Positions 14,485-42,189 are shown, numbered from the stretch's first letter. The stretch: DNA of 44,862 nt from Macrostomum lignano (GCA_002269645.1 NIVC01000058.1:1-44862); one strand, 5' to 3'. Notes: generated by a model from the sequence alone, not told the origin. Numbers and translations: made by a program.

Positions 14485-14935
14485 TGCTTTCTCTTCCCTC
14501 TCTCCCCTCTCTTCTCTCCTATCCTTCTCCTCACCTCTCTTCTCTCCTATCCTACTCCTCACCTCTCCTGTCCTCTCCCCACCTCCCCTATCTTCTCCCC
14601 TCATCTCTCCTCTCCCCATCTCTCTTCTCCTCTCCTCTCCTTTTCTCCCCTCTCCTCTCCTCTTCTCTCCTCTCCTCTTCTCTCCTCTCCTCACCTCTCC
14701 TCTTCTCTTCTCTCCTCTCCTCACCTCTCTTCTCCTCTCCTCTCCTCTCGTCTCCTCTTCTCTTCTCTCCTCTCGTCAGATCTCCTCACCTCACCTCTCT
14801 TCACCTCTCTTCTCCTCTCTCTTGTACTCTGTACCGTTCTCTCTGTATTCTCTCTCATTGTCTCTCTCTCATTCTCTCTAATGTCCTTTCTTCTCTATTT
14901 CCTCTTCTCTCTGTCTTTTTCTCTTTTTCTCTGGC
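14485..14935. repeat. Polypyrimidine (CT-rich) low-complexity tract
   Basis: Direct reading; CTCTC/CCTCT/CTCAC units. Confidence 0.93.
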
Positions 14936-15628
14936 TATTGAGCTAAAAAAGATTGACCGACTCCGCAAAAAGTAAATTTTTCAATTTTTTTGGTTGCAAA
15001 CGTATTTTAGATTAAAAAACCACTGCTTGGCTCATTCTATTTATTACTAAATTACACATACTATAAACTAAAAGTGCAAGCAGATCGAATCAGCTGGATG
15101 CAGCTCAAGCTCCGAGCAGCCATCCAGACTGCAGGTTTTCTCAGGCAGTTAAAAAAGCGTTCGTTAAAGCCGTTTTTAACTGGAAGCAAGCGTGCGCCAA
15201 CCATGCAGTCCTGGCTATGCGATGTCGTTAATAATTTACACGGCAAATGAAACAGCCAGAGAGTTGGGGGGGGGGGGGACAACGGCATGAAAGGCTGCAG
15301 ACGGAGTCTGATTCTCTTCTAACTAAATACAGGAGAAGAGCTACCAGGAGCCATAGCTTGCCCTAGTGTGGGTCCAAGCCTGGGGTATAATGGCTATTTT
15401 TATAACAAAAATTAGATTTATTCAACTTCGCAGCTTGGAAACGTTTGGCATTTCTAGCACAAATTTTTATTCACAATACATATAGTTCTACTAATTAACT
15501 GTTTTCGATCGAATAAAATGCTAGAAAATCTTACTGTAAAAGATGAAGCCTACAGCTGGTTTGGTAGGGTTGTGGCAGACCACAAATCCTATACAAAACA
15601 GTATAAGGATTGGACAAAAATTTCTATG

Positions 15629-15924
15629 TAATAATAATTGATCACATCTGCCTAGGGCAGATGTGCAACCGACAGCTCTGCCGGCGCGGCGCATTTGAAG
15701 GCTGCGTACGGCTGTTCAATCCAAAGACCAGGGGAGGGGGGTCGCCACGCACACCCTCAATTACCCCAGCTAATGCTGGCACCCATTTTACAGCTGGGTG
15801 AACTGAAGCAATGCAGAGTTACGTGTCTTGCTCAAGGACGCAAATTGTTCCAGTGGGATCGGGAATCGAACCCCCGACCTTCAAGTCGTGAGTCCGACGC
15901 TCTAACCACTGGGCTACAACAACC
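15629..15924 (-). mobile_element. tRNA-derived SINE with CORE-like central domain
   Basis: Minus strand: A box TAGCCCAGTGG, B box GGTTCGATTCC, then CCTTGAGCAAGACACGTAACTC...CAGTTCACCCAGCTGTAAAATGGG (MIR/CORE-like), and a (TTA)n tail. Confidence 0.8.
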
Positions 15925-16098
15925 CCTCTATGTATTACCTGTAAACCTGTACCTGTGACTTTAAAACGATAAGCAGCAAAAACACAAAACTTCATACTCT
16001 TCTTCTTTGGCATCTTTCCACTCAAGGAATGCACCCTTAGCCTACACACGCACTTCTGCCCACGCCACACGAGCCCTGCACCTCCTCCTCCGTGAAAC

Positions 16099-18333
16099 AA
16101 ACAACAACAACAACAAAATACGCGACCCCGCATGCACAGTCACAGTTAAAGCAGGGCGCGTCAGATGGCGCGCCGCAGAGCCTGGCAGAGAACAAAGTCC
16201 GCTCCGTTGGCAGTGTCGGGCGCCCCAGCGTCGCACAGCAGGCAGTCCACGTATCGACGGGTTCAGGCCTGACATCGCCTGAAGAGACCCTGCAAGGTAA
16301 GCAGCAGGACGTCCTGAACAGGTTGGGGGCAGTAGCCCTCGGCCCGGATCACGTGGCCCGCCAGTTGATGTCGCCGCCGGCGCAGGATGATGGACGGGCG
16401 CTGCAGCTTGGCCCGATCGTACAGGGCCTCGGTCCCGACGCTCTCGTCAGTTTGAAAGGCCGCACGGAGCAGCCCTGAGTGCGCCGAGTCCAGATGCCGC
16501 TCCAGCGTAGCCGTCAGCGTCCACGTCTCGGCGTTGCAGGACGGTTTCGACCACCACCTGCCACAGTCGAGCCCTCTGGCGGTCGGGCAGCGCTTCGGAC
16601 TGGAGGACGGCTCGGATCGAACGAAAAGCCACCCAGGCAAGTCCTCTGCGCCGCCGGAGGTCCTCTTCCACGTGGGGCACCAGACCGCCGATGTAGGTGA
16701 ACCGCTGGCAGCGTGCGAGCCTGGTCGTCTGCCCGTCTGCGCCGCGGCACGTCAGGTCCGCTGGGATGTCGGCCGGCACAGTCAGCACCTCGGTCTTCAG
16801 CGTGTTGACGATCAGACCGACGCTCGATGCCACCTCGACCAGCCTGTCGATATGGCGCTGGGCGCCTTCAACGGACGAGGACAGGAGGGCGAGGTCGTCG
16901 GCGTAGCCAAGCACGCTTAGGCGCTTTTCACCGTGGCAGCGACCGATGCGTCTGCGCAGCAGGAAGCCGTCATTAGCCGAGGGGAGTGCGGTCCGAAGCA
17001 CCCAGTCCAGCAGCAGCACGAAGAGGAACGGCGCTAGCGTGTCGCCCTGCAGAACTCCTGATGAAGTATCGAACAGGTCAGACAGGCCGTCCGCCGTCAC
17101 CACAGCAGCTCGAGTATCGCAATACAGCGCCATGACTGCGTCTACTAGCTGCTGGGGTACCCGGTAGGCTCGAAGGACAAAGGGGAGCGCGGCTCTCAAC
17201 ACCGAGTCAAACGCCTTTCGAAAGTCAACGAAGACAATGATCAGCGTAGACTGGCGGATGCGCGCCTCCTCGATGACACGGCGGAGTGCGAGGATCTGTG
17301 TCACTGTACCTCGTTGTGGCCGGATTCCGTTCTGCTCGTACCGCAGGTACGGGTCCAGCACCGACTGCAGACGATCAAGCAGCAGCCGGTTGAAGAGCTT
17401 CGCGGTGCAGGACATCAGCGAGATCCCGCGGTGGTCTTCCTTCCGCGTTGTCCGTGTCTTCTTCGGGATCGGCACGATGTGCGCGACGGTCCACTCGGTA
17501 GGCGCAGGAGCGCCGGCGAGCACGCGGTTCATGACGCCTGTGACCTGGGAGGCCACACAGCGGAGCCGCAGCACTTCGACCGGGACTTCGTCGGAGCCGA
17601 GCGCCTTGCCGCCTGATGTTTTCCGAGCGTACAGCACAACGTCCTCCGTGGTGACTGGTCTGGTGCAGAAGTCCTTCTCAGCTGGGAGCGGCGTGTCCAG
17701 TGGGAGCGCAAAGCTGGCGGGCAGCGGCGACGCGGGCGCGTTCACGATGCCGGCAAGAAGTCGCGCAATTCATTCCTGCGCTCCTCCAGGGTGTCGCCGG
17801 CCAGGTTCAGCGCCACGCGCTTTTTGCTCCCCGTCAGAGTCCGGACGGCCGTCCACACTGCGCGGCTCTTCACGTCGGGGCCGGCTGCAGTGATGGACCT
17901 AATGGCGTCGTCGACAGCGGCCTGCTGCTGCTCGTCAAGAAGGTGCTCAAATGCGTCTTCAGCGTCGCCTGTGGGCCTCCGGTTTCTGCGGAGTCGCTCG
18001 ATGTTGAGCTGCGCCAGCCTGATGGTCGGGTCGCTCTGCCAGACAGGCAGCGATTTCTGCGCTGGCCGCATCAGTGGGACCGTCTACTCCGCAGCGGCTC
18101 TAACGGCGGTGCTGATGTCGGAATACTCCGCCTCGCGCTGGTCTCCAAGCGCGCCGACGAAGGCGCCCGTGAATTGACGCTTCGTGAAAAGTCGCAGATC
18201 AGGAGTCGGTGGTCTGACCGGAGAGCCAGCGGAGCTATGGTGTCGCAGTTGGTGACGGGGCGGTGCTCGCGAGTGCGAACCAGCGCATGATCGAGTTGCG
18301 CCAGTCTCATCGTGGCGTTTTGCCCGCGTGCGT
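16099..18333 (-). mobile_element. 5'-truncated RTE-group non-LTR retrotransposon (end of APE endonuclease plus reverse transcriptase)
   Basis: QLDHAL and SDHRLL (APE C-terminus); RT motifs HRGISL, FVDFRKAFDSV, GVLQGDTLAPFLF, YADD; (TTG)n tail. Imperfect TSD tccgtgaaac (16089-16098) / tccgtgagaac (18334-18344). Confidence 0.93.
16263..18310 (-). pseudogene. Disrupted APE-RT ORF of the LINE
   Basis: Split over four ORFs (18071-18310, 17742-18071, 16447-17745, 16263-16640), implying three frameshifts. One near 17750 is repaired by a single added base (RDFFAGIVNAP). Confidence 0.88.
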
Positions 18334-19004
18334 TCCGTGAGAACTTAATTCATAAAACAATCTTGAGGCGAAACCGACATTTTATTTCTGGAAACAAGCC
18401 AAAAAGTGACCATTTTTATATTGTTGACTTTTACCGAAACATTTGAAATCAAGATCGAATAGAGATTAAAAACGGATCCAGACACCTCCTTGTCGAGGCT
18501 CAAGACAAGCCAGCACAAAGCTATTTTGAGCTTGCCACAACTGCCAAAGCTACTCAGCAGCAATGTAGATACTAAGCTCATTAAAAGCGTTGACTATAGC
18601 TACCAGAGTAAAAAAAGTTTAAAAAATCCCTTTGTTCGCCCAAAATCGGCTTGAGGCAGAATGAGTTGATTACTGATGCAGAGGGGAGTCCCGTTTGGCC
18701 GCAGCATCCCGCAACTTCCCATCCCATTGAGAATGCTCAATGCCACCAATTTACTCTCAGCTGCCGCATGACGGGCAAAGTTTCTCTCTCCATCCCGAAG
18801 CTAATTAGCTACTGTCGTGGGATGGTTTCCATGGAGACGAGGACAACAAATTCTATTCACTGGATAGCCCAGCCAGCCAACAGGAAAATGCAGCTGAGAC
18901 ACTATATTTAGAGCTGCAACTGCTCACTGGCTTAGCGACTTTCCTGGCTTAGAAGCATCTACCAATCTACCTCGACAACCAAGCCCTGCTGTCAGCGTCT
19001 TGGA

Positions 19005-20055
19005 ATGACACTTCACGAAGCTGCCATAACCTTGGCAGTGCTGATTTCATTCGCCGACGGTACATCTTTTGTCTTCGACAAGAGGCCGGACTTGTGTCAC
19101 AATGCTGAGACTGCAGCTGACGGTCCGCGCAAACTGCTCGGCATTGTCGATTCTCAAGTGTGCGCTGTCGAATGCGCGAGCATCACGACTCTGTGCTCAG
19201 TGTATGAGTACTCGCCTAGCAACAGGTCGTGCATTCTTGGAAACAGCTGCGACCTGCTGCATTTCTGGCAACTCAGCGGCGGACCGGCCTGCAACACGCA
19301 GGTGCTGCGAGGCGCAGCAGACTGTGAGACTACGTCAGTAACTCCGACTACGACTTCAATTCTGACGACCCCGACTTCGACTACCTCGACTCCGACTGCG
19401 ACTACGACCATTACGACTCCGACCACTACGATAACAACCACGACTCCGACTACCACAACCACCGCTACTCCGACAACCACCACGACTCCGACTACTACAA
19501 CCACCACGACTCCGACAACCACCACGACTTCGACAACCACCACGACTCCGACTACCACAACCACCGCTACTCCGACAACCACCACGACTCCGACTACCAC
19601 AACCACCACTACTCCGACAACCACCACGACTCCGACTACCACAACCACCACTACTCCAACTACCACAACCACCACTACTCCGACAACCACCACGACTCCG
19701 ACTACCACAACCACCACGACTCCGACAACCACCACGACTCCGACTACCACAACCACCACGACTCCGACAACCACCACGACTCCGACAACCACCACTACTC
19801 CGACAACCACCACGACTCCGACAACCACTACGACTCCGACAACCACTACGACTCCGACTACAACCACCACACCGACTACAACAACCACGACTCCGACTAC
19901 GACCACCACACCGACTACAACAACCACGACTCCGACTACGACCACTACGACTTCGACTACGACAACCACTACGACTCCGACTACGACAACTACTACGACC
20001 CCGACTACGACCACTACGACAACCACTACAACTCCTGCTCCAATGGTAGTAACAG
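19005..20055 (+). CDS. Gene A exon 1: signal peptide, PAN/apple-like Cys domain and Thr/Pro mucin stalk
   Basis: Hydrophobic N-terminus [19 protein letters not shown]; [26 protein letters not shown] fits the PAN C-x3-C-x5-C-x2-Y-x-Y-x6-C-x-L pattern; (PTTTT+)n; phase-1 donor ACA G|gtaggc. Confidence 0.85.
19330..20035 (+). repeat. Coding Thr/Pro repeat (PT4-6) of gene A
   Basis: Direct reading; mixed 15/18/21-bp units. Confidence 0.93.
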
Positions 20056-20678
20056 GTAGGCATAAAATGAATTTTAACATACGGAAGTATTAAGAAACTA
20101 AAGTTTTTTAAACCGAGCATTCAGCTGGAAATACTGACAGAAAAAGCTTAAGGTTGGTCTCGCAGTCATACGGCTTAAGCTTTTCCATAAGGAAATGTTT
20201 TTAAACCACTGGTTCTGAGCGCGTCCATAGAGAATCATTCAATCACCCGCAACAAAATTGCTCTTAGTTAAAGCTAAATTAAAAAAGAGATATCCAGAGC
20301 TGGACAAAGGACAGGCGGCTTAACTTGTGGCTCCTCTTGGATGTGACATCCGCCAGCAGGGGGAGACAGGGGCGCCCGCAGAGCTCATGAAGCCATTTGC
20401 ATATTTCAAAGACTCAAACATCGTACTTTCAATCTTCAGTTTTCACGATTTTTTGCTAGAAATTTCCTATACATATTGAAATTGAAATTTCGAATTTCAA
20501 ATGAATCAAGGGTCTGTTTTGTACGAGGCGCACACAAAAGTTTATCAAGCAGTTTTTTTCTCTGAAAATACATTTTTTCTACAGTACATGCATTTTTTAG
20601 TGCAGCGTCCATCTAATTTTGTTGTCCAATGAATTTATATTTATTGCATAACTTCGAATCGTCAATTTAAATTTTCAG

Positions 20679-21421
20679 TGCCAACCTCGGGTTCAAAACA
20701 ACATGGAACGCCGGTGACCTACACGCCCCCTATGGACAATGCCTGCTATCGTTTCGAAGCGCGTGGCGCCAAAGGAGGTTCCGGCGGAAGCGCAGCCGGT
20801 GGCAACGGGGCTATAAAAATTGCCCACTTTATCCTGACCAGCTCTCAGACGTTGACTATTGTTGTCGGAAAACCCGGAAACGATGGCGATGGCGGCGGCG
20901 GAGGAGGCGGCACTTTCGTCTACACGAGTGGCGGCAGTCCCGTCCTGCTGCTGGCGGCCGGAGGAGGAGGCGGTGGAGCAGACGTCAGTTCGGCTACAGG
21001 CAGCCCTGGAATCAGTTCGACCGGCGGCTGCTCCGGAAACGCGGGAAGCAACCCGTCCGGAAATAACTGCGGCGCCAGTGGTGCAGGATGGCAATCATCT
21101 GGAACTTCACCAGGTAGCAGTCAATGTGGCGCCGTTGGAAGTGACATGGCAGGAGGTGATGGCGCATCAGGCGACGGCGGCTTTGGTGGCTACGGTGGTG
21201 GAGGCGGTGGAGGCCGAACAGCTGGAGCAAATAAGGCCGGAGGCGGCGGCGGCGGTGGCTACTGCGGCGGCTCCGGCGGCGAATCGGGCAGTCCAGGTGG
21301 CGGCGGCTCCAGCTATGCAGCTTCTTTAGCTAAGCAAGTTTCAGGATCGGATGGAGGCAACACCGAATCTGATGGCAAGGTAGACATATCTATCGTGAAT
21401 GGCTCCTTCTGCACACCGTGA
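20679..21421 (+). CDS. Gene A exon 2: glycine-rich domain of the ALK/LTK ectodomain type; the spliced product is 597 aa
   Basis: Acceptor attttcag|TG completes GTG in frame. YRFEARGAKGG...GGNGA.I...F.L...L.IVVGKPG...GGGGGTFV...LLLAAGGGGG follows the GRD pattern. Stop TGA at 21419-21421. Confidence 0.87.
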
Positions 21422-21495
21422 GCACCGGTTGAAAACGTTAACATGACTTTATTCGCTAAGAACTCACTGCAAGCAACTCTCTTATGACTTTAGCA

Positions 21496-21697
21496 CAGGG
21501 GTTGGCAAACTCTTTTTACCTCAAGGACCAAAAGAGAACCTAAGCGCATGACTGCGGGCCAGAGAAGGGGGGAGAAAACAGAACAGTGGGATGGCTAAAT
21601 TGTAGAGTTTTAAAGGACCCGATCCGCGAGGCCCCGATAGATGAGGCTTTGCGGACCTCATGTGGCTCACGGGCGGGAGTCTGCCGACCCCTACCTG
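21496..21697. mobile_element. hAT-like MITE (202 bp)
   Basis: CAGGGGTTGGCAAACTC ... GAGTCTGCCGACCCCT(acct)G; 8-bp TSD ctttagca/ctctagca with one mismatch. Confidence 0.7.
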
Positions 21698-23569
21698 CTC
21701 TAGCAACGCTGAGGTGACTCTTGTAAATTTTAACGACTCAAATGCAACGGAGAGGCGATTGTGGAGTACAAAAAACGTGCGTCACGTGATCGTTGTAGAT
21801 TCGTAGAAGAGTCATGGAAGAGTCGTTGCGTTAGCGCTTAACTTTCTACTAACTTTTTGCCTATTATTAACCCTTTTTTACCGGTTTTTGCGTGACGCGT
21901 GACTCTGGGGACCTTGGCCTGGGTACCGTTTTCATCGGGTCAGGTAGAATCTCAGCAGTCGTGCAGCTGTAGCTCTTGAGATTTGGAGTTCAATATTATA
22001 TATGCAGATTTCATGTAAAACTAAATTAGGAGGTAGGAAGTTTTAAGTTTTAATCTTGAAATTTCCAATATTTTGTTTCTTTTTGCTAATTTGGCGCTTT
22101 TCCCGAGGTGCAGCACTCAACAAGTTAGGCGAGAAATCAAGTTCAGCCATCGAAAAATAAGTTATTTTTCTAGACTCTTACTACTAGAAGTAGCTCAACT
22201 TTGAGCTATAATTCCCCTATGTTTTTAATGTGACATATGTTTTCTGACTAACAAACTTTCTTTTCTATATAAATTTAAACGACAAAAAATAAAGCTACTT
22301 TTTAGAAACAAAACTGCTGTCAAAATCGAAAATTTAAACTTTTTTTTACCTTTCTCTCAATCGATTCTTATATTCTTATATTTCTTAAAAATATCGCTAT
22401 ATTTTCTATACAGAATCAAGCTATATTTTTACTAGTATGATCCTACTAAACTACATAATTACTACTAAATGACACTAAAAGAATAAACTGTGTGACACCG
22501 AAAAAATCTATCCATATTCGATAAACTTTTATATTCGTTTTGCCTTTCTTCGGATTTTTTACAATTTTTACGGACACAAGTATAGCCGCATATTTTAATT
22601 TAGCCGATCGTTAAACAACAACTACAGAAGGGGGGAGGTGTCAGTCAGAACCTGTAACATTAACAGTCCTGCACATACAGACCGTTATTAATTGTATCAA
22701 TTGCAGGAGGGTTGCGGGCACCTTGGCGGAGCAACGCCTTCGGCGGTGACATCGTCACACAATTCCAGCGCTAGCTGGGGCATGCAATTCTACCCATATC
22801 GCTGACTCCTGAAAACAGACAAGCGCACCAGTGCGGCCCTGACTGTACTTTCTATTCTTCAGGCCAGCACTCTCCCGACCTTATATCGCTAAGATTACGC
22901 ATGATACAATGGACCATAGACGTAAGTTGTGATGCTCACACTTACGATTTGCTTAAACATGTCGCAGTTCGGCCTTGCGTAAGTGAGCGCAATTTTATGA
23001 GCTTGCAATTTTGCGAAAGATGCAGTTTCTCGAAATGTTCGCATGTCTATGGTACGTCTTTCGTAAGGTTAATGATCCTAACTCTACGACTGCTCTCGGG
23101 ATCAATCTGAGGGACGATTCTTTAATGCTGCAAGTGACAGCTAAGATCATGGCGACCAAGCGTCAACCCAACTTCCAAGAAACATTAGAAGAAGAAGGAC
23201 GGGACACTTCGTTTCTTGGAAAATTTATTAAAGGCTGATTTTCGCGGAAAAATGTGAGGTGGGGGCAAAGAAAAGAAAATTTGGTGGGGGTGTTTGGGCG
23301 GTTTCTAGAACTTTGAATTCCCGCCTTCGTTAACTCGGCACTCGTAAAGCCGGAAAGTTGCACGGACTTGTTCAAGTCGCTTTTCTCCTTTGATACTCCG
23401 TCTGCCGGGTCCTCAATTCCGCGGGTGGGTAGTCGTAATCGCAGTCGAGCGGTCTTGAGCAGGCACGGTCGTTCAGATTGTAGACACAGCGGTCTTGACA
23501 CCGTAAATTTCACTGTTCGCCTATTTGCTTAACTGTTTACTATAACAGTAGTAGAGTACAAGGCCCACT

Positions 23570-24525
23570 CACCTCTCCTCTCTTACCTCTCTTCTCCTCC
23601 CCTCTCCTCTCCTCTCCTCACCTCTCCTCTCCTCACCTCTCTTCTCCTCTCCTCACCTCTCTTCTCCTCCCCTCTCCTCTCCTCACCTCTCTTCTCCTCT
23701 CCTCACCTCTCTTCTCCCCTCACCTCTCCTCTCCACATCTCTCTTCTCCTCTCCTCTCCTCTCCTCTTCTCCCCTCTCCTCTCCTCACCTCTCTTCTCCT
23801 CCCCTCTCCTCTCCTCTCCTCACCTCTCTTCTCCTCACCTCTCCTCTCCTCACCTCTCTTCTCCTCCCCTCTCCTCTCCTCACCTCTCTTCTCCTCTCCT
23901 CACCTCTCTTCTCCCCTCACCTCTCCTTACCTCTCCTCTCCCTATCTCTCTTCTCCTCTTCTCCTCCCCTCTCCTCTCCTCTCCTCACCTCTCCTCTCCT
24001 CACCTCTCCTCTCCTCACCTCTCTTCTCCTCTCCTCTCTTCATCTCTCCTCTCTTCACCTCTCTTCTCCTCTCCTCACCTCTCTTCTCCCCTCACCTCTC
24101 CTCTCCACATCTCTCTTCTCCTCTCCTCTCCTCTCCTCTTCTCCCCTCTCCTCTCCTTACCTCTCCTCTCCCTATCTCTCTTCTCCTCTTCTCCCCTCTC
24201 CTCTCCTCTTCTCTCCTCTCTTCACCTCTCCTCTCCTCTCCTCTCTTCATTTCTCCTCTCCTCTCCTCTCCTCACCTCTTTTCTCCCCTTACCTCTCCTC
24301 TCCTCTCCTCTCCTCTCCTCTCTTCACCTCTCTTCTCCTCTCCTCTCCTCTTCTCCACTCTCCTCCCCTCTCCTCTCCTCTCTTCACCTCTCCTCTCCTC
24401 TCCTCTCCTCACCTCTTTTCTCCCCTTACCTCTCCTCTTCTCCCCTCTCTTCTCCTCTCTTCACCTCTCTTCTCCCCTTACCTCTCCTCTTCTCCCCTCT
24501 CTTCACCTCTCTTCTCACCTCTCTT
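23570..24525. repeat. Polypyrimidine (CT-rich) low-complexity tract, ~950 bp
   Basis: Direct reading. Confidence 0.95.
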
Positions 24526-25085
24526 CTCGAATCAGCTTGATACAGCGCAGGCTCCGAGCAGCCATCCACACTTTGCCAGGTTTTCTCAGGCAGTTAAAAA
24601 AGAGTTCGTTAAAGCCGGTTTTAACTGGAAGCAAGCGTGAGCCAACCATGCAGTCCTGGCTATGCGATGTCGTAAATAATTTAAACGGCAAATGAAACAG
24701 CGAGAGAGTTGGAGTGGACGACAGCATGAAAGGCTGCTCCAGACGGAGTCTGGTTCTCTTCTAACTAAATAGGAGAAGAGCTACCATCAGGAGCCTCTCG
24801 TTTGTCCCTATAGTGCGGGGCCAAGCCTGGAGTGTGGCTATTTTATAACAAAAAATTAGATTCATTCAAATTTTCTCAGCTTGGAAACGTTTGGCATTTG
24901 TAGCACAAATTTATTCACATTACAAATAGTTATAATTAACTGTTTTCGATCGAATAAAATGCTAGAAAGTTTTACTGTAAAAGATGAAGCCGATGGTAGG
25001 GCTGAATGTAGGGGTTGTGGCACTATAAGGATAATAAGGATAAATCCTTGAAAAACACTATAAAGATAGGACAAAATTTTCCATG

Positions 25086-25390
25086 TAATAATATAATAAT
25101 TGATTACTCCTGTCCTAATGGGCAGATGTGCAACCGACAGCTCAGCCGCAGCTATTGCAAGGCGCATCTGAAGGCTGCGTACGGCTGTTCAGTTCAATGA
25201 CTGGGGAGTCGCCACGCACACCTTTAATTACCCCAGCTAATGCTGGCACCCATTTTACAGCTGGGTGAACTGAAGCAACGCAGAGTTAAGTGTCTTGCTC
25301 AAGGACATAAATTGTTCCAGGGGGATCGGGAATCGAACCCCTGACCTTCAAGACATGAGTCCGACGCTCTAACCACTGGGCTACAACCCC
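25086..25390 (-). mobile_element. tRNA-derived CORE-like SINE, paralogous to 15629-15924
   Basis: Same A/B boxes, core and flanks as the copy in block A. Confidence 0.8.
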
Positions 25391-26241
25391 TCTGCATGTA
25401 TGCATTACCTGTAAACCTGTACCTGCAACTTCAAAACATAAGCAGCAAAAACACAAAACTTCATACTCTTCTTCTTTGGCATCTTTCCACTCATAGAATG
25501 CACCCTTAGCTTACACACGCACTTCTGTCAACGCCACACGAGCCCCGCACCTCCTCCTCCATGAAAACTTAATTCATAAAACAATCTTGAGGCGAAACCG
25601 ACATTTTATTTCTGGAAACAAGCCAAAAAAGTGACCAGACTTTTATATTCGACTTTTATTTTCGACTTTTATCGAAAAATTTGAAATCAAGATTGAATAG
25701 AGATTAAAAACGGATCCAGACACCTCTTGTCGAGGCTCAAGACAAGCCAGCACAAAGCTATTTTGAGCTTGCCACAACTGCCAAAGCTACTCAGCAGCAA
25801 TGTAGATACTAAGCTCATTAAAAGCGTTGACTATAGCTACCAGAGTAAAAAAAGTTTAAAAAATCCCTTTGTTCGCCCAAAATCGGCTTGAGGCAGAATG
25901 AGTTGATTACTGATGCAGAGGGGAGTCCCGTTTGGCCGCAGCATCCCGCAACTTCCCATCCCATTGAGAATGCTCAATGCCACCAATTTACTCTCAGCTG
26001 CCGCATGACGGGCAAAGTTTCTCTCTCCATCCCGAAGCTAATTAGCTACTGTCGTGGGATGGTTTCCATGGAGACGAGGACAACAAATTCTATTCACTGG
26101 ATAGCCCAGCCAGCCAACAGGAAAATGCAGCTGAGACACTATATTTAGAGCTGCAACTGCTCACTGGCTTAGCGACTTTCCTGGCTTAGAAGCATCTGCC
26201 AATCTACCTCGACAACCAAGCCCTGCTGTCAGCGTCTTGGA

Positions 26242-26968
26242 ATGACACTTCACGAAGCTGCCATAACCTTGGCAGTGCTGATTTCATTCGCCGACGGTAC
26301 ATCTTTTGTCTTCGACAAGAGGCCGGACTTGTGTCACAATGCTAGCACTGCAGCTGACGGTCCGCGCAAACTGCTTGGCGTTCCCGATCCTCTAGAGTGT
26401 GCTGTCAAATGCGTGAGCAACACGACTCTGTGCTCAGTGTATGAGTACTCGCCTAGCAACAGGTCGTGCATTCTTGGAAACAGCTGCGACCTGCTGCTTT
26501 TCTGGCAACTCAGCGGCGGACCGGCCTGCAACACGCAGGTGCTGCGAGGCGCAGCAGACTGTGAGACTGCGTCAGTGACTCCGACTACGACTTCAATTCT
26601 GACGACCCCGACTTCGACTACCTCGACTCCGACTGCGACTACGACCACAACGACTCCGACTACGACCACTACAACTCCGACTACGACCACTACAACTCCG
26701 ACTACGACCACTACGACTCCGACTACGACCACTACGACTCCGAGTACGACGACAACAACTCCGCCTACGACAACCACTACGACTCCGACTACGACCACTA
26801 CAATTCCGACTACGACCACTACAACTCCGACTACGACCACTACAACTCCGACTACGACCACTACGACTCCGACTACGACGACGACAACTCCGCCTACGAC
26901 AACCACCACGACTCCGACTACGACCACTACGACAACCACTACAACTCCTGCTCCAATGGTAGTAACAG
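26242..26968 (+). CDS. Gene B exon 1: signal peptide, PAN/apple-like domain and shorter mucin stalk
   Basis: Paralog of 19005-20055; phase-1 donor ACA G|gtaggc; 727 bp. Confidence 0.85.
26570..26950 (+). repeat. Coding Thr/Pro repeat (mostly 21-bp PTTTTTT) of gene B
   Basis: Direct reading. Confidence 0.93.
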
Positions 26969-27006
26969 GTAGGCATAAAAAGAATCTTAGCATACGGAAT
27001 TATTAA

Positions 27007-29030
27007 CAGTAGAAAGTCCATGGGGGTGTATTTCAAATACACACATTTTTCCTTTGTCTGGATCTCCAAAAATATTCAACAACCAATTGCCATGAAAATC
27101 CAGAACACGGGCTAAAATTTTCCCTTCTGTTCGATGAAGCAACTTTGGGAATCACTAAAAATCGGCATCGTTGGGAGATATTCAACGATTCTCCTCGGGG
27201 TGTCTGGTGGCAAAAATCACCAACTGATGTGTTCCTTACTACCAAGACTAATCAAAGAACAATCACTTCTAGCTACTGCTAGGCAACCCAGTAATCAAAT
27301 GAAGATATCTCTTACCTTGAGTCCTGTCTTGGAGAGCTCTTTCTTGTTTTGCAGTTCTCGAACTTCTTGGCTCGTTAGACGTCTATGTTTCGTAAACTAG
27401 GTCCGCGTTCCTTTACTTCCACTGAAGTCGTTTCCGGCCGGTATCTGTCGTTTGGAGCAATCAGAAGCTTCGTGTTATCAATGGGGATCCCTGCGCCTTA
27501 ATGCGGTTTCAAATAAGCCTCCTCCCTCTAGCGGTGTCTTAATGCACCCTAGGTATAGCTCCGGTATTCACTGATAGTCTGAGATCTATCAGGGTAGTCC
27601 TTCTGGAGACTACAACCAATGGAGTCTCAAATAGACTCAAGAGTCTCAACAGACTCAAGCACAACCACAATAATGAGTCGACTCAAACAACGGGCGCAAA
27701 TGAGTAAGGCTTTCCGCAAGAACTCAGCCGAGTCTCGGTTGACTTGGTCTGCAGGAAGTCCTCCTAAGGCTTCCTCTTCGGAGCTTCTCCTTCTGGAGGT
27801 TCGGTTGTTGGCTCCGGGTCCGCTTCGCTTCGGACCACTTGTATTTATAGGCAACCTTTGCGACGTATATAAATAGCAGCATGATTCATCTTTTTTGGTA
27901 ATAAATAGTAACATGACTCTTCTTTGCGTTATAAATAGCAACATGATTCTTTTTGTGCTATAAATAGTAAGGTGATTCATTGTTCGTAAAAAATAGTAAC
28001 ATGCTTCATGGTTTTCGATAAAATAGTAACTTGACTCACGGTTTAAGTTTCGCTGCGCATTTTTGCATTAGTCTACTTAAAGTAGCATTCTATGAATAAA
28101 CCTCTACATTAACAATTTTGTGATCTTTTGTGGGAAGTAAAACACTCTACACAACATTGGCAAAATGTTTCTGCTCACAAAATCTCATCGTGAAACCACG
28201 TCGGCTCAACAAACTTTGGTTATCAGTCGCAGGAACTTTTGCTCTCAGCATCCCAGGCACCAGAGTCCTCTTTATCGCCGTCTGGAGCATCGGCGGCGAC
28301 CGTCGGGACCTTCAACAAAAGCACCCGATCGGCATCTCAGAGACCGCTGCGTTCCCAAAACTCTCAAATTTAACATGGTGCAAAAGCATTGTATAATATG
28401 CAGACATGCCTGGTTTGGTGCCTTGATAGAAAAACCACGATGTTGGGGGTGCCCGCTCGTCAGGGCCGCGTGGTGGCACTCCGTTGAAGCTCCTGAAGGT
28501 CGCCTGTATGTCTACAGGTCAGCCTAGAGGGTCGCCATCGTCCATTTCATTCACAGATTATGTCTACTGACTGAATGCTTCATGCAGAAGAGGATTCTTC
28601 CACTTCAGTTTTGGGAACGCAGCCGTCTCTGAGATGCCGATCGGTGCTTTTGTTGAAGGTCCCGACGGTCGCCACCGATGCTCCAGACGGTGATGAAGGG
28701 GACCCGGTGCCTGGGATGCTGAGAAAAAAGGCCTCTACGACAGATGGACCCAAATTATTGAGCCAATATGGATTCACCATAAAGGTTTATACAGTGTAGT
28801 GTTGGTTGGCCTTGCCACCAGTGTCTTCGACAAGAATCGTTGAATATCTCGACGATGCTGACGTCGGATGACTTTGAAAGTTAGTTCGTCGGAAAGGGCG
28901 GAAAATTTTGATCCATGTGGTGGACTTCTACGAAAATCGGTTTGCGAGCTATCGTGAAATGGGTCGTGTGTATTTGTAATACACCCCGTGGTTTTTCCCC
29001 ATGGGGAAAAATGGCGTGGTCTTTCTACTG
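27007..29030. mobile_element. Non-autonomous DNA transposon (2024 bp) in a TTAA site
   Basis: TTAA|CAGTAGAAAG ... CTTTCTACTG|TTAA. Further inverted matches lie at 27018-27045/28965-28991 and 27165-27191/28833-28860. The paralogous intron in A has a single TTAA at 20090-20093. Confidence 0.9.
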
Positions 29031-29619
29031 TTAAGAAGTAAAGTTTATATTTAAACCGAGCCTTCAGCTGGAAATACTGACAGAAAAAGCTTAAGGTTGG
29101 TCTCGCAGTCATACGGCTTAAGCTTTTCCATAATGAAATGTTTTTAAACCACTGGTTCTGAGCGCGTCCATAGAGAATCATTCAATCACCCGCAACAAAA
29201 TTGCTCTTAGTTAAAGCTAAATTAAAAAAGAGATTTCCAGAGCTGGACAAAGGACAGGCAGCTTAACTTGTGGCTCCTCTTGGATGTGACATCCGCCAGC
29301 AGGGGAGACAGGCGCGCCCGCAGAGCTCATGAAGCCATTTGCATATTTCAAAGACTCAAACATCGTACTTTCAATCTTCAGTTTTTAGGATTTTTAGCTA
29401 GAAATTTCCTATACATATTGAAATTGAAATTTCGAATTTCAAATGAATCAAGGGTCTGTTTATCAAGTTTATCAAGTTTATCAAGCTGCATTTTCTCTGA
29501 AAATGCTGCACAGGAGACTACAGTACATGTATTTTTTAGTGCAGCGTCCATATAATTTTGTTGTCCAATGAATTTATATTTATTGCATAAAATTTCGAAT
29601 CGTCAATTTCAATTTTCAG

Positions 29620-30362
29620 TGCCAACCTCGGGTTCAAAACAATATGGAACACCGGTGAACTACACGCCCCCTGTGGACAATGCCTGCTATCGGTTCGAAG
29701 CGCGTGGCGCCAAAGGAGGTTCCGGAAGCGCAGCTGGTGGAAACGGGGCTATAAAAATTGCCCACTTTGTCCTGAACAGCTCTCAGACGTTGACTATTGT
29801 TGTCGGAAAATCCGGAAACAATGGCGATGGCGGCGGCGGCGGAGGCGGCACTTTCGTCTACACGAGTGGCGGCAGTCCCGTCCTGCTGCTGGCGGCCGGA
29901 GGAGGAGGCGGTGGAGCAGACGTCAGTTCGGCTACAGGCAGCCCTGGAACCAGTTCGACCGGCGGCTGCTCCGGAAACGCGGGAAGCAACCCATCCGGAG
30001 GCAACTGTGGCGCCGGCGGTGCCGGATGGCAATCATCTGGAACTTCACCCAGTGGCAATAATTGTGGCTCAGTTGGAAGTAACTTTGCAGGAGGTGATGG
30101 CGCATCGGGCGACGGCGGCTTTGGTGGCTACGGTGGTGGAGGCGGTGGAGGCCGAACAATGGGAGGCAATAAGGCCGGAGGCGGCGGCGGCGGCGGTGGC
30201 TACTGCGGCGGCTCCGGCGGGGCGCAAGACAATCCAGGTGGCGGCGGCTCCAGCTATGCAGCTGCTTCAGCTAAGCAAGTTTCAGGATCGGATGGAGGCA
30301 ACACCGAATCTGATGGGAAGGTAGAAATATCTATTGTGGCTAGCTCCTTCTGTACACCGTGA
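29620..30362 (+). CDS. Gene B exon 2: ALK/LTK-type glycine-rich domain; the spliced product is 489 aa
   Basis: Acceptor aattttcag|TG; paralog of 20679-21421; stop TGA at 30360-30362. Confidence 0.87.
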
Positions 30363-30436
30363 GCACCGGCTGAAAACGTTAACATGACTTTATTCGCAAA
30401 GAACTCATTGCAAACAACTCTCTTATGACTTTAGCA

Positions 30437-30653
30437 CAGGGGTTGGCAAACTCTATTAGCTCAAGGGCCAAAAGAGAACCTAAGCGCATGCATGACCGCG
30501 GGCCAGAGGAGGGGAGAGAAAAAACAAAAATGAGTTAAGAAGGTAAATTCCAATTGAGCGGGCGGGATGGCTATATTGTAAAGTTTCGAAGGACCTGATC
30601 CGTGAGGCCTGATAGAGAAGCTTTGCGGGCCGGCCCACGGGCCAGAGTTTGCC
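30437..30653. mobile_element. hAT-like MITE, paralog of 21496-21697, right end deleted
   Basis: Left TIR and ctttagca are intact; about 35 bp covering the right terminus and TSD are missing relative to A. Confidence 0.6.
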
Positions 30654-32449
30654 TTGTAAATTTTAAAGACTCAAATGCAACGGAAGAGGCGAGTGTGGAG
30701 TACAAAACGCGCGTCACGTGATCGTTTTGTATTCTAGATTCGAGACACGGAAGAGTCGTTGCGTTAGCGCTTAACTCTCTACTAACTCAAGCAGGCCAAT
30801 TAGAGTTTAATAGTCTTAGACAATCAAACGCCTTATAGTGACTCTTTAGGCGACTTTTACCGTGACATCTCGTGTTACAGTCGTCAGTACACTTTTCTCT
30901 CGTATTTTACCTGTGTTACCTGCAACAACTCGACCGGGCGGGATGCAAGCGACTCTGGGGACGCTTCTTGGCCTGGGGTGCCGTTTTCATCGGGTCATGT
31001 AGAATCTCAGCAGTCGTACAGCAGTATAGCTCTGGAGATTTTGATTTCAATATTATATGCAGATTTCATGTGAACCTAAATTAGGAGGTAGGAAGTTTTC
31101 AGTTTTTTATCTTGAAATTTCTAATATTTTGTTTCTTTTTTGTTTTGCGCTTTTCCCGAGTTGCAGCACTCAACAAGTTTAGCGAGAAATCGAGTTTCGA
31201 CATCGAAAAAATTCGGTCGAAAGTAAAAGAAACTAATTGATTGTGATAAGTTTGATTGTACTTCGAAGTAAATTATGTACTAGTGGAAGATAAAACACAC
31301 CTTTTGAGGGGGATATTTGTATAAAATTATACAATTTATGAAAATAGCTCCCGAAAAGGGCACGTTTTATCTCATAAATCATACATAAAAATTTACGGGA
31401 TATTATTGAATAATATCACCCAATAAAATGCTGAGTAGTTTGTTTTATCAGTAAACAAATAACACAAAATCCTGACCTTGCCAGTGCGATTAAGTTATCT
31501 TTCTAGAATCTTACTACTATAAGTAGATAAACGTTGAGCTATAAAAATTCCCAATGTTTTTTTAATGTGACAATTATGTTTCCCGACAAAATTATAATAC
31601 ATTTAAACAAAAAAATCAAAGCATCTCTTTATAAGCGAAACTGCTGTCAAAATCGAAAACTTTATTTTTTTTGCTTTTTCTCCAACATTTTTTCTCTCAA
31701 TCGATTCTTATATCGCTATATTTTCTATACAGAATCAAGCTATATTTTTACTAGTATGATACTACTAAACTACATAGTTTCTACTAAATGACACTAAAAG
31801 AATAAACTGTGTGACACCGAAAAAATCTATCCATATTCGATAAACTGCAGCGTTTTGCCTTTTTCTTCGGGTTTTTTTACAATTTTTACGGACCCAATCG
31901 TTTAACAACAACTACAGAAGGGGGGAGGTGTCAGTCAGAACCTGTAACATTAACGGTCCTGCACATACAGACCGTTATTAATTGTATCAATTGCAGGAGG
32001 GTTGCGGGCACCTTGGCGGAGCAACGCCTTCGGCGGTGACATCGTCACACAATTCCAGCGCTAGCTGGGGCATGCAATTCTACCCATATCGCTGACTCCT
32101 GAAAACAGACAAGCGCACCAGTGCGGCCCTGACTGTACTTTCTATTCTTCAGGCCAGCACTCTCCCGACCTTATATCGCTAAGATTACGCATGATACAAT
32201 GGACCATAGACGTAAGTTGTGATGGCCACACAGTTTGACTATGCGTACGAGTGATCGCAATTTTACGAAAGATGCAGTTTCTCGAAACGTTAGTATGTTT
32301 ATGGTCTTTCGTAAGGTTGATCTTAACCCTACGACTGCTCGGGACCTGTCGTAAGAAGCACTTATGGGACCTATCTGAGGGGCGCTATCGTCAATGCTGC
32401 AAGTGACAGCTAAGATCATGGCGACCAAGCGTCACCCCAACTTCTTCAG

Positions 32450-33270: not shown

Positions 33271-33669
33271 TCAAGCAGTCTTCGGCGCCAGAGCTCGCAG
33301 TTCGCGGATGCACTGCTGGATAGCCTCTTTCTCCTGTTGCGGCGTGATGCTCTTCGTCACGCCGTCCAGCACCCACTGGACCAGGTGCTGCTGCTGGAAG
33401 CTCTTCTTGGCAGCGGCCAGCTCCACGTGGTAAGTCATCCGGCGCTCCACGGTGCGGGCGACCTCGGCGAGGCGGCGGCGATACTCCTCCTCCAGCTGGA
33501 GGTCGAGAATCTCCCGCTTGGCTTTGAAAGCCTCCTCAAAAACGATGGGGGAGCTCTGTAGCTGGGACTCGGTGAGCCGCACGAGATCCCTGCCGGAGTC
33601 TTTGGCGGCCTCTATCGGGCGGACAATGACGGACTCGTTGAGCTCGTTGGCCTTCTTGGCTTCCATTTC
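33271..33669 (-). CDS. ATP5PB: Mitochondrial ATP synthase F0 subunit b, exon 3 (terminal)
   Basis: Acceptor ccgcgcag|GAA. LQLEEEYRRRL...QQQHLVQWVLDGVTKSITPQQEKEAIQQCIREL matches the subunit b C-terminus. Confidence 0.93.
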   Translation of the reverse strand, partial: EMEAKKANELNESVIVRPIEAAKDSGRDLVRLTESQLQSSPIVFEEAFKAKREILDLQLEEEYRRRLAEVARTVERRMTYHVELAAAKKSFQQQHLVQWVLDGVTKSITPQQEKEAIQQCIRELRALAPKTA

Positions 33670-33789
33670 CTGCGCGGTTTTTTTGATGGTTCAGTCAGCA
33701 TTTTCTTAAGATTTAATAATCCTTTCTGACCTACTTTAAGTAGAATGCATGCACACACTTTGCAAAGCTGCATTTTAAGCATCAGAATC

Positions 33790-34125
<336 letters not shown>

Positions 34126-34499
34126 TCGAAAATTTTTATCAAAGAGTCGTCAAGAGTCAATTTTTAGCGTTTTAATGTCCGCGAATCGAAAACCACTTTG
34201 GGCCGTAGAGTCGCTATAGAATCACTGAGTTGCGTCTAAAGCGCATCGTTATGAATGATTTTATGAACTAGAATTGCATTTATAACAACTCTATTTAGTC
34301 TACTTGTGTTAGTAGAAAGCTAAGCGCTAATACAACAACTCTTTAAACGAATTTTCGCGACTGTAACGTTTCTACAACTATTGCGACTCAAATTTCGCCT
34401 CTCTGTCACATTGCAGTCGTTTGAGTCGTTAAAAAGTCACAAGAGTAACGTAAACAAAGAAACGAAGATGCTGACTTAAAAACACATTTGAGCGCAAAC

Positions 34500-34954
34500 C
34501 TTAATCCGTTGACCGTATTTCTTAACGAAAGCAATAAGGGCTGGAACGGACACGAGCAGCACCATGCCCTCGGGGTCCAGCACCCAGTACTCTTTGCTGA
34601 TTAGAAAGGTGGGCACGCCGAGGGCCAAGATGTAGGGGCCTAGGACTCCGGTCTTGTTGTAGAAGGCCTGGAACCAGGAGTCCGGCAGGATGCCCAACCG
34701 CACTTTGGGCATGTGCGGCTGCATCTTCACTGGCGGATAGTTGGTGAAGTCGCGGTCCTTGCCGTAGTAAATCTCGTGCAGCCGTTCGAATCGTTCGGTA
34801 ACGCTGCTCAGACCGGTCTTGGTCTGCTCCTTCCAGGCCTCCATGGACTTCAGTATCTTGGCCGAGCCCTGATCGATGAACTCCTCGCGCTCCGGGCCCT
34901 TGGGGATGGCCAGGGCGGCGCGGGAGGTGTGCAGCAGCCGGGCGCTCAGGGACA
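34500..34954 (-). CDS. ATP5PB: Mitochondrial ATP synthase F0 subunit b, exon 2
   Basis: Boundaries ccggcag|TG and AAG|gtttgc. KVRLGILPDSWFQAFYNKTGVLGPYILALGVPTFLISKEYWV matches VR.G.IPE.WF.F.Y.KTGVTGPY. Confidence 0.94.
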
Positions 34955-37879
34955 CTGCCGGGGATTGAACAAAGCATACACATAATTAACAGGTGTACAT
35001 TGGCCCAGACTTTCTAATAGTCAGGCAGACAAACTTTCAATGCCTTGGGTGTAGGGATGGCCCTCATGGGTTTGAATTGCACAGCCCCAATTTTTGAGTA
35101 CAGTATTCAATTTAATGTTATACAATCATGTTAGCCAAATTGGCCATGTGAGATGGTAATTGTGCCTTATATAATATACTAGATTAAGTCAAAAAGTCTA
35201 TTCATATTCTTAAGAACTTCACTGAAGCCATAGGCTAGACAAAAACCTCTTCAACAAAAGGTTGTATTCTGAGCAGCAGTACAACACAAAGGCTAAGTTT
35301 ATACATTGCTACTAGGCGCATAGCCAGGATTTACATCAGGGGGGGGCAGAGACATAAATCCATCTCCAATGGAAGCAATGGAAGCAAAATACAAAGGCAG
35401 TAAACCAACCCCTCCAGGGGGACATGTCCCCATTGTGCCCCTTGACTAGGCCCCTGATTGTTAAATTGATTTTTGATTTGTTACTAGTCTACTTATAGCT
35501 TACTTTACTTATTTTAAATCAAACTTTTGAACCCATTTAATTAACTTTAAATACATTTGAACCACACTGACTTAAGAATCATTTGTCTTTGCTTATTTTA
35601 AAATGGCTACCCAGTATATATTAACACATTAGCTTAGCTACTGCATAGTTCACCTATAGCATATCACCCAATATTTATCATTAAGATGTCAGCATAAACT
35701 TGTTGGCAATGGTCTATACATAATATTATCAACTCATAATAAAAACATGCCTATGGTATTATATATTATATAATACTTTTATCATCTATTAATATTTTAA
35801 TATACATTTAATATACATTTTAATATTATACATTTTTTATATTCATCTAATAATATTTATATTATTATATAATATTTTAATCATCTTTTAAGTTAGGACA
35901 AAAACTATTAGTAAAACAACTTCCTTTGACAAATTAAATTTTGTTTTATGAATCAACTCATAAAAGGACTTTATAGTAAATTTTAAAATAAATTTATGAA
36001 GAAATAGCAACATTGCTATTGCTATTGCTATAGGCAGTTAATAAAGGACATGATAGCTAATAGATAGCCTTTTCTCCAATATAATAAAAATGATATCCTA
36101 ATAATAGTTTACTATCTATTATTGTTTGTCAACTTTTTATTTACTAGGCCTATATGAACATATGCTAGGATGCAACCTAGGAATTTACCTAGCTATTTTT
36201 ATTGGAAACACATATATAACTTGATATTGGACAGAATAGTAGTTGTGACAATGTCGTTATAATATTTTTTAGTTTTTATCTGATTTTTTAGTGTACTTAA
36301 ATTGATTTTTTGTAATAATTATGGGGGGTAGGGGGAAAGCACTTGTTATAGGAAAATTATGTCTATTATTTCATCTACTGTTTTATTATTTTTGTTACCA
36401 CATTTTTGAAGTTAGTATTGAAGGTTTTAGTGGAGCAGTTTTGCTGCAGTTTTGAGTGCGGGTGTTTTGTGTTTTTGGTGTAGGCTCTTCCTCTCCCTCC
36501 TCACGCTTGGCGTGTCTCGTTACCTTAGTCCAGTGATACCAGACAAGACTATTTGAAATAATTTTGCTCTATAGGCTATAGAGCCAACCAAACCAAATTA
36601 ACATTAGATTATATTTAGTATATTAGACTTAGTCACTCTGCTACTGCCAAGACTGTGCCCCTAGGCCTAGTAACTTTAAATATAAGTTATATTATTTTTT
36701 GTCAAGTTCTACAACTAAATAAATAACCTAGAATAATTAATAATAAATTTAATAGTTAATTTAAGTCACCGCTATTTCTTTCTTTCTATTTGAATTGTAT
36801 TAAGTGCTCTGCTACAGTAGTCATATGACTACTTTTAGCCATTAATGACTTACATATGTATTGCCAACATGATTCCTAATCATGTTGGATCAAGAATTAG
36901 GAATCAGGCTAGGTGATATATAAATAATGATATATAAAAATATCCCAGCCTTGAACTTAGGCCAAATAATTAGCATTTTGCTGTAGCCATAGCTATGGCA
37001 AATATGGTAAAATAGGTGCCTATGGAAGCTACAAATATGCCTACAGTAGCTAGCTGCTCTTACGGCTATGTCTACAGAAATATGGTAGTTGTTGTCACAT
37101 TCTGTAGATTCCTATAGCCATAGTTATTAATGTTAAAAAATTGAAAAATATTAGAAACAGGTAGAGTAAAACAAAGATACTTTTAGTAAACTGTATTATC
37201 AACTTAGAAACTTTTAAAATATACCTAAAAAAAGTACAATAAAACACTAGCAAACATTAATTTTTATTAATGTGAAAACGTTTAGCATTAGTACTCTCAG
37301 TAACGATAAAGTATTATTGCTTTGAAAAAAGACAAAATATAATCTTACAAAGGCAATTGAGTGTTTCTTTTATTTTCTAACTTAATTTGCAATTGTTTAA
37401 GCACTAGGTTATCTTCTTGATTCAAAATATTTTGTTTTCTAGACTTTTTGTTAAAACTATGGCTACAGCTATGGGAACTATAGGAATATAGGGGTATAGG
37501 GGTATAGGGGAATATAGGAATAGGGGTCCCTATGGCTATGGAATACAGAGAATTGGAATAAGCCATAGTTTTGCATATGGCTATGGTATATGGACCCTCT
37601 TTATGGCGGAACACTACAAAAAACCTAGACTGTATATAGTTTTGCTAGTCTTAAACAAAGAATAAGGACTAATAAGATTTTTAAAAATTATTTTCTTATA
37701 TTTTTTCAATTTTTATTCTAGTTGATAAATCTCATTTGCCTAAAAGACACATTACTTTCAAAAATTGGTCAAGTTATAAAGTTGACCATAAGTTGACCAA
37801 AAGGTGTTTTAAAAGAAATAGATAAGAATATAACTCATTTATCTTTAAAAGGATAAATTTATAATCAAATACATTGTTA

Positions 37880-40896: not shown

Positions 40897-40936
40897 ACTG
40901 CTTAGGAAGAAAAACCCTGGAAGCCAATGAGGCCAT
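40897..40936 (-). CDS. ATP5PB: Mitochondrial ATP synthase F0 subunit b, exon 1 (start of targeting peptide); full CDS 894 bp, 297 aa
   Basis: ATG GCC TCA ... CAG T|gtaagc. Phase 1 matches exon 2 (T+TG = Leu), giving the presequence-like MASLASRVFLPKQLSLSARLLHTSRAALA. Confidence 0.8.
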
Positions 40937-42134: not shown

Positions 42135-42189
42135 CTGGCGTGGTGGAGCGGTGAGTTGAGGGGAAGCTAGGTACTATGCGGTTCGGCCG

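Follow-up and report, generated by a model that had tools for sequence, protein, structure and literature searches.

A tandem pair of Macrostomum lignano genes encoding predicted secreted proteins with a PAN-like module, a Thr/Pro-rich stalk and an ALK/LTK-type glycine-rich domain

The window analysed here, the whole of a 44,862-nucleotide stretch of the genome of the flatworm Macrostomum lignano (GCA_002269645.1 NIVC01000058.1:1-44862), carries two tandem genes, A and B, on the + strand. Each has two exons parted by a phase 1 intron (Table 1), and the joined exons encode uninterrupted proteins of 597 residues (A) and 489 residues (B), in which a leader is followed by a cysteine-rich module resembling PAN domains, a stalk of threonine and proline and a C-terminal glycine-rich domain (GRD). 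The start of gene A was placed at the ATG at 19005, the earliest in-frame start, with an in-frame stop 24 codons before it. An earlier interpretation made from the sequence by itself, hereafter the sequence-only reading, had treated the four open reading frames (ORFs) of the region as two intact two-exon genes with a phase 1 intron, and this was borne out, the joined frames being open and the splice sites of the two genes identical. Because the four long ORFs have splice sites, frame and 14 cysteines in common, the gene pair is more than a chance arrangement.

The top database match of the C-terminal domain is A0A1I8GWL7, a UniProt gene model of M. lignano that is 97% identical to the GRD over its in-frame part. 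The model represents a third gene copy with frameshifts, which may be assembly errors, and comprises the end of the PAN-like module, a short stalk read out of frame and the GRD. The model crosses the predicted exon junction one base out of frame (...NS/ANLGFKTTW, corresponding to AAC AG/T GCC AAC CTC GGG, the slash marking the junction), and this lends indirect support to the splicing predicted for genes A and B. Gene A, gene B and A0A1I8GWL7 are the only three copies known, and a search of the assembly index with the exon 2 ORF returned no matching record.

On the Kyte-Doolittle scale with a 19-residue window, a hydrophobicity of at least 1.6 was reached only at residues 6-24 of both proteins, and no second hydrophobic segment that would indicate a membrane anchor was found beyond the leader in A or B. 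The C-terminus (...ISIVNGSFCTP) is hydrophilic and thus offers neither a transmembrane (TM) helix nor a glycosylphosphatidylinositol-type tail. The stop codon falls at the end of the GRD, likewise in the coral and bacterial homologues, and Pfam gave no match to a kinase or EGF domain in either protein. Eight cysteines lie in the PAN-like module and six in the GRD, at positions that match between A and B. The stalk is 76-80% Thr and 14-16% Pro across both copies and is encoded by imperfect 18-, 21- and 42-nt tandem repeats through which the ORF remains open; the length difference between the stalks is exactly 108 codons, which preserves the frame across a hypervariable repeat. The combination by which a protein is called mucin-like, a leader with a long Thr/Pro repeat region, was found in both proteins, and N-glycosylation sequons were found as well. 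Both proteins are therefore, as far as composition and hydrophobicity can predict, soluble, secreted and O-glycosylated. The sequence-only reading had proposed a secreted three-part architecture without a TM segment or kinase; the leader as the only hydrophobic part, the stalk, the cysteine counts and the end of the protein at the conserved stop all agree with that proposal.

The N-terminal module is probably a divergent PAN/apple-like module, judging from its profile scores and core motif. Pfam PAN_1 (PF00024, gathering score 21.4) matched copy B above threshold, at 24.3 bits (E = 2.8e-5), and copy A just below it, at 18.7 bits (E = 0.0016); the PAN assignment made previously was thus reasonable, with copy B meeting the Pfam threshold and copy A falling short of it. 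The core, C..C...C.S.Y/N...C.L.N, aligns with that of coral PAN domains, four cysteines being invariant, and hhalign of the flatworm against the coral PAN sequences aligned a 35-column core with a probability of 3.9% (E = 0.011). PAN domains commonly bind carbohydrate or protein.

The polyglycine GRD is the ligand-binding module of the ALK/LTK ectodomains. When the flatworm GRD was compared with the PDB by phmmer, only chains of the ALK ectodomain were returned (E = 3e-4, about 24 bits). An alignment with 12 relatives of the PF12810 type was collinear over the whole length, with 38 invariant columns and the motif order Y.I...GA.GG; L.IVVG; GGGGGGTFV; AAGGGGG; GGFGGGGG; GGGGGGY.GG; GGGGS.Y; GDG.V.I. 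The AlphaFold2 model computed from this alignment had a mean predicted local distance difference test score (pLDDT) of 74.6 and a predicted template modelling score (pTM) of 0.81, and in it the N- and C-terminal strands sandwich a long, non-regular Gly-rich insertion. When the model was searched against the PDB with Foldseek, ranks 1 to 21 were all occupied by the TNF-like/glycine-rich (TG) region of ALK or LTK (E 1.6e-10 to 1e-5; template modelling score 0.54-0.65), and the first match other than ALK/LTK had an E of 0.027. Since the model and its ALK/LTK-only top matches concur, the assignment of the modelled domain to the ALK/LTK TG-type fold is sound. The sequence-only reading had named this domain type and suggested comparing AlphaFold models with ALK/LTK structures; both the motifs collinear with PF12810 proteins and the 21 best structural matches uphold it. 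The flatworm GRD starts about 35 residues later than the ALK, coral and bacterial domains, the strands with the pattern YxFTxxGxxGxxGP being gone, and no hidden exon for these N-terminal TNF-like strands was found in intron A or intron B.

A profile built from the GRD alignment was searched against 1.84 billion representatives of clusters at 50% identity, where it matched 13,565 clusters at E<=1e-3 and 2,310 at E<=1e-30. Many of the proteins are of giant size and contain as many as nine GRDs; the bacterial relatives include myxobacterial 'glycine rich protein' entries and fusions with PEP-CTERM, FN3 and Ig-like parts. Predicted viral structures (BFVD) yielded 60 GRD matches at E<=1e-3, among them cyanophage and Caulobacter-phage virion/tail proteins and giant-virus proteins. 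In a 5.8-billion-protein database the best sequence matches of the flatworm GRD belonged to the bacterial/phage-type 'glycine rich protein' family (E 1e-13 to 1e-9), and bacterial and metagenomic proteins reached 50-66 bits with the domain, ALK about 24 bits. By these matches the GRD is a member of the broad, mostly non-receptor PF12810 superfamily and is unlikely to be a piece of an ALK receptor or its decoy. The absence of a receptor, which the sequence-only reading had singled out as remarkable, is accordingly the usual state of the domain, most of whose clusters, bacterial, phage and giant-virus proteins included, are non-receptor proteins. No single closest donor lineage appeared among the sequence matches, so that an origin of the GRD exon by horizontal transfer from bacteria is neither supported nor excluded. 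RefSeq and UniProt label kinase-free GRD proteins, those of phages and giant viruses among them, as 'ALK tyrosine kinase receptor-like', 'loricrin-like' or 'receptor protein-tyrosine kinase'; such receptor and loricrin names are an annotation artefact that the glycine-rich domain produces systematically. In the literature searched, a single paper mentions PF12810; it describes a nematode-killing fungus with three proteins of this kind, to which no function is assigned.

Self-BLAST of the window revealed a tandem duplication of about 9 kb whose copies, each holding one of the genes, are 85-92% identical. In the signal peptide and PAN region 3.2 synonymous and 13.8 non-synonymous changes were estimated (Nei-Gojobori), a ratio of non-synonymous to synonymous rates (dN/dS) of 1.43 that does not differ from neutrality (Fisher, p = 0.77); the 11 amino acid changes between A and B in the PAN region are clustered at residues 35-60. 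The GRD gave a dN/dS of 0.56 (21.7 synonymous, 34.3 non-synonymous), a weak departure from neutrality (Fisher, p = 0.04), and its approximately 27 substitutions all lie between the five invariant Gly-run motifs and none inside them. It is chiefly the surface of the PAN module, the loops of the GRD and the stalk length that set the paralogues apart, a distribution that suggests diversification of binding specificity and reach.

The duplicated segment holds several other elements. The conserved upstream region (18334-19004 and 25558-26241) contains an identical 86-residue ORF (18651-18911 = 25888-26148) and gave no match to an Rfam family or tRNA; gene conversion, a constrained promoter or 5' untranslated region, or a small unrecognised element are possible causes of its conservation. 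A GC-rich (64%) insertion at 16097-18334, present in copy 1 only, carries a 432-residue reverse transcriptase ORF (16447-17745, - strand; RVT_1, E 2e-30) and is a retrotransposon fragment, inserted upstream of gene A later than the duplication. The additional 2 kb of the gene B intron contains a pair of inverted repeats (28190-28362 and 28607-28777, 86% identical) and is probably a transposable element insertion. A tRNA-Met-like element at 25318-25392 on the - strand was reported by ARAGORN and scored 30.2 bits against the Rfam tRNA family (gathering score 29); it had no detected counterpart in copy 1 and may be a tRNA-derived short interspersed element or a decayed tRNA gene. The two gene copies are parted by an array at 23564-24528, the expanded counterpart of 14489-14830.

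Table 1. Features of genes A and B and of the duplicated segment (positions count from the first letter of the window; a slash marks an exon-intron boundary; aa, amino acid residues).
Feature	Position	Strand	Remarks
Gene A exon 1	19005-20055	+	ends ...ACA G; donor ACAG/GTAGGC
Gene A intron	20056-20678	+	phase 1, GT...AG, 623 nt
Gene A exon 2	20679-21421	+	acceptor TTTTCAG/TG CCA; stop 21419-21421
Gene B exon 1	26242-26968	+	donor string as in gene A
Gene B intron	26969-29619	+	phase 1, 2651 nt; ~2 kb extra (27007-29030) relative to intron A
Gene B exon 2	29620-30362	+	acceptor string as in gene A; stop 30360-30362
Gene A start codon and predicted signal peptide, aa 1-20	19005-19064	+	sole hydrophobic 19-residue Kyte-Doolittle window; putative cleavage site (A-x-G/T)
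Gene A PAN/apple-like 8-Cys module, aa 21-111	19065-19337	+	Pfam PAN_1 sub-threshold; core motif; Cys kept in B
Gene A Thr/Pro mucin-like stalk, aa 112-346	19338-20042	+	235 aa, 80% Thr, 14% Pro
Gene A TNF-like/glycine-rich (TG-type) domain	20679-21421	+	247 aa, 32% Gly, 6 Cys
Gene B signal peptide and PAN-like module, aa 1-111	26242-26574	+	Pfam PAN_1 above gathering score
Gene B Thr/Pro stalk, aa 112-238	26575-26955	+	127 aa; 108 codons shorter than stalk A
Gene B TG-type glycine-rich domain	29620-30362	+	247 aa; 92.6% nucleotide identity to A
Duplication unit copy 1 (gene A)	14489-22941		self-BLAST; interrupted 16097-18334
Duplication unit copy 2 (gene B)	23564-32231		self-BLAST
670 nt upstream of ATG			98.2% nucleotide identity between copies
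Signal peptide and PAN			95.0% nucleotide identity between copies
Shared part of intron			93.8% nucleotide identity between copies
GRD exon			92.6% nucleotide identity between copies

Taken together, it is somewhat better than an even chance that the genes encode a secreted, O-glycosylated, two-headed binder or cross-linker built from a PAN module, a mucin stalk and a TG domain. We infer two binding heads because the proteins combine a leader, two compact cysteine-stabilised modules, N-glycosylation sequons and a Thr/Pro stalk whose length varies. Such a protein would be released into an extracellular secretion, which may be mucus, glycocalyx or a gland product. Its PAN head would bind a glycan or a protein and its GRD head a second partner through loops, a mode of binding known from ALK and presumed for the GRDs of phage virion and bacterial surface proteins. 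The TG domain would form a beta-sandwich with a rigid polyglycine lattice, in which variable loops between the invariant Gly runs make the contacts, and the glycosylated stalk would serve as a hydrated spacer between the heads.

Several observations weigh against this interpretation. The PAN module was modelled by AlphaFold2 with a pLDDT of 35 (from a 2-sequence alignment), had no relatives in the search of 5.8 billion proteins and no match in the PDB by phmmer. For the GRD, Pfam ALK_LTK_GRD (PF12810) gave 13.4 bits (E = 0.078) with copy A, the cut-off being 24.5, and no match with copy B; the score is depressed by the low-complexity bias correction. The leader is without a basic n-region, and the dense O-glycosylation and extended shape of the stalk are expectations taken from its composition. 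The dN/dS of the PAN region and an upstream region that is better conserved than the exons (98.2% against 92.6-95%) would also fit relaxed constraint. Finally, the literature provided no tie of these genes to M. lignano in situ or proteomic data sets, and a literature search on M. lignano with glycine-rich, loricrin or PAN proteins yielded nothing relevant.

The possibility was considered that the proteins are reproductive secretions, products of a sex gland (prostate, cement or shell) passed on at mating or egg laying and evolving quickly under sexual selection. The tandem duplication and the rapid divergence of an N-terminal module with no detectable homologues outside the species, as judged in the 5.8-billion-protein search, would be expected of such proteins, and the candidate seminal fluid proteins limited to the M. 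lignano prostate are mostly secreted and without recognisable homologues (PMC5977470). However, the excess of non-synonymous change in this module is not significant, the seminal fluid screen yielded no match in its supplementary files and the genes are tied to no organ, so that this reading is rather unlikely. A lectin for immune or microbe recognition, in which the GRD, the PAN head or both bind microbial glycans and the stalk tethers microbes in mucus, would draw by analogy on the relatives of the same fold in phage virion/tail and bacterial surface proteins, on the affinity of PAN domains for carbohydrate and protein and on the loop and surface residues in which the paralogues differ. Since the phage and bacterial GRDs are themselves mostly uncharacterised in function, and three known copies do not make a large diversified family, we regard this as distinctly unlikely. 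Both proposals are narrower forms of the two-headed binder, and the present data cannot separate them.

It is also conceivable that the two genes are decaying duplicates, their ORFs intact through recency while the loci are silent or degenerating into pseudogenes. Conservation of the exons does not exceed that of the shared intron and upstream region (92.6-95% and 93.8-98.2%), the PAN region has a dN/dS near 1.4, repeats and remnants of retroelements abound in the DNA around the genes, and the sole database relative, A0A1I8GWL7, is itself frame-shifted. Against this, its frameshifts may be errors of assembly, and A and B have kept the start codon, the splice sites, the frame across the hypervariable repeat, the 14 cysteines, every Gly motif and the stop, with a dN/dS below 1 in the GRD (p = 0.04); decay is on this evidence decidedly improbable. 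A soluble decoy, as entertained in the sequence-only reading, in which the free GRD sequesters a ligand of the ALKAL/Jeb/HEN-1 type and so tunes ALK signalling, is highly improbable even though the fold corresponds to the TG region with which ALK/LTK bind ligand. The similarity to ALK is marginal, below that to bacterial and metagenomic GRDs, the cysteine pattern differs, and the EGF-like domain and the N-terminal TNF-like strands are missing from the proteins and are not found in the introns. The decoy reading is thus unlikely because the GRD lies nearer to bacterial and metagenomic proteins and no EGF-like domain accompanies it.

The ALK/LTK GRD has been studied almost only within an oncogenic receptor, whereas the same fold occurs in thousands of uncharacterised proteins of bacteria, phages, giant viruses and invertebrates. 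A small, soluble, duplicated GRD in a flatworm that is tractable to RNA interference and in situ hybridisation would offer a handle on the binding of free GRDs and on the role of the polyglycine lattice; the gene pair alone reveals no new mechanism.

Elsewhere in the window, a 1,454-residue open ORF on the - strand (6149-10513) contains about twenty tandem repeats of 25 residues (75 nt; HQTSGMSSDLRPPSETRDEDLAPVT; array 6906-8422). Pfam gave no match for it, and the ORF probably represents a large exon of a repeat protein that is acidic and rich in Ser and Pro. An exon for a CYRI/FAM49 Rac1-binding domain lies at 581-~970 on the + strand (Pfam CYRIA-B_Rac1-bd, E 1e-41), and its ORF runs into a simple-sequence satellite (1013-1394), which occurs again at 33787-34123. 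Two exons on the - strand, at 33271-33666 (Mt_ATP-synt_B, E 1e-16) and 34476-34955 (a presequence-like N-terminal start with no Pfam match), likely belong to a gene for the mitochondrial ATP synthase B chain. Strand-skewed C/T-rich minisatellites, with a GC skew down to -0.55, were found at 14489-14830, 23564-24528, 2157-3056, 42157-42807 and 43202-43635, and a 6-kb block at 35000-41000 has 27-31% GC, compared with 45-64% elsewhere, and no long ORFs. Rfam and tRNA scans of the whole window returned one marginal tRNA-like element only.

Among known systems, the adhesive proteins Mlig-ap1 and Mlig-ap2 of M. lignano resemble the products of genes A and B in being secreted, repetitive and glycosylated and in having protein- or carbohydrate-binding modules (PMC6410801). 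Both adhesives are very large: the Lys/Arg-rich regions of Mlig-ap1 alone exceed 3,600 residues, Mlig-ap2 has 46 central repeats, and the domains of the two are vWD, C8, TIL, C-type lectin, EGF, LDL-receptor and TSP-1, with neither PAN nor GRD (PMC6410801). As the domain sets differ, it is ruled out that genes A and B encode these adhesives.

The TG supradomain of ALK and LTK (PDB 7N00, 7NX1, 7LRZ and 7LIR) has the same beta-sandwich, the same Gly-run insertion and the same motif order as the flatworm domain. In contrast to these receptors, the flatworm proteins lack a TM helix, a kinase and EGF-like, MAM and LDLa domains; the ligand-binding region of ALK also includes its EGF-like domain (PMC10605310). 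The flatworm GRD is only about 22-25% identical to those of ALK/LTK, has a different cysteine pattern, is without the first ~35 TNF-like residues and is placed at the end of a mucin stalk. The bacterial, phage and giant-virus 'glycine rich protein' family (PF12810; e.g., in Archangium gephyra) has the same motif order and likewise comprises extracellular and surface proteins. Unlike in the flatworm proteins, the GRD is often repeated in its members (as many as 9 copies in one protein), and PAN and mucin parts are absent.

Among the matches of the profile search were stony-coral proteins of approximately 435 residues, kinase-free and with a single C-terminal GRD. They are named 'ALK tyrosine kinase receptor-like' in Montipora (M. 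capricornis and M. foliosa; Montipora XP_068722524.1) and 'loricrin-like' in Stylophora pistillata (XP_022786737.1), and those of Oculina patagonica are uncharacterised proteins (LOC144649705). Pfam PAN_1 was matched at their N-termini with 30.3, 22.2 and 18.7 bits; the middle part is an EGF domain, or a COLFI-like piece, and the GRD comes last. Like the flatworm proteins, these PAN-EGF-GRD proteins have a signal peptide, an N-terminal PAN_1 module and one GRD at the protein end, with no TM segment or kinase, and in the flatworm, as in a coral-type contig, the GRD lies on one exon after a phase 1 intron. A coral-type GRD exon was seen at 5999-6813 of an ENA metagenome contig, beside a gene for a rhodopsin-type G protein-coupled receptor; the sequence clusters with Montipora proteins, which marks it as animal (coral) DNA within a 'metagenome'.

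The two groups differ in the linker, which is an EGF domain or COLFI-like piece in corals and a mucin stalk in the flatworm, and in the N-terminal strands YNFTTLGA.G..GP, which the coral GRD keeps and the flatworm GRD does not. Their PAN modules have only the generic core in common, and the flatworm GRD scored 50 bits against the coral GRDs and 56-66 bits against bacterial and metagenomic ones. Because the PAN likeness is generic and the GRD is no closer to coral than to bacterial proteins, neither orthology with the coral proteins nor common descent of the two architectures is supported. An old metazoan family of soluble PAN-linker-GRD proteins, with flatworm and coral branches, in which the GRD would be a free extracellular recognition head with a ligand of its own and would represent the state before its recruitment into the ALK/LTK ectodomain, is distinctly doubtful. 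The sequence-only reading had found no characterised protein with this architecture; that holds literally, as the coral proteins are uncharacterised, but a predicted precedent exists in them. The combination of PAN and GRD without a receptor is thus already present in public predictions from corals, and the flatworm genes are a variant of a widespread kinase-free GRD class, distinguished from it by their mucin stalk and by the loss of the first ~35 TNF-like residues.

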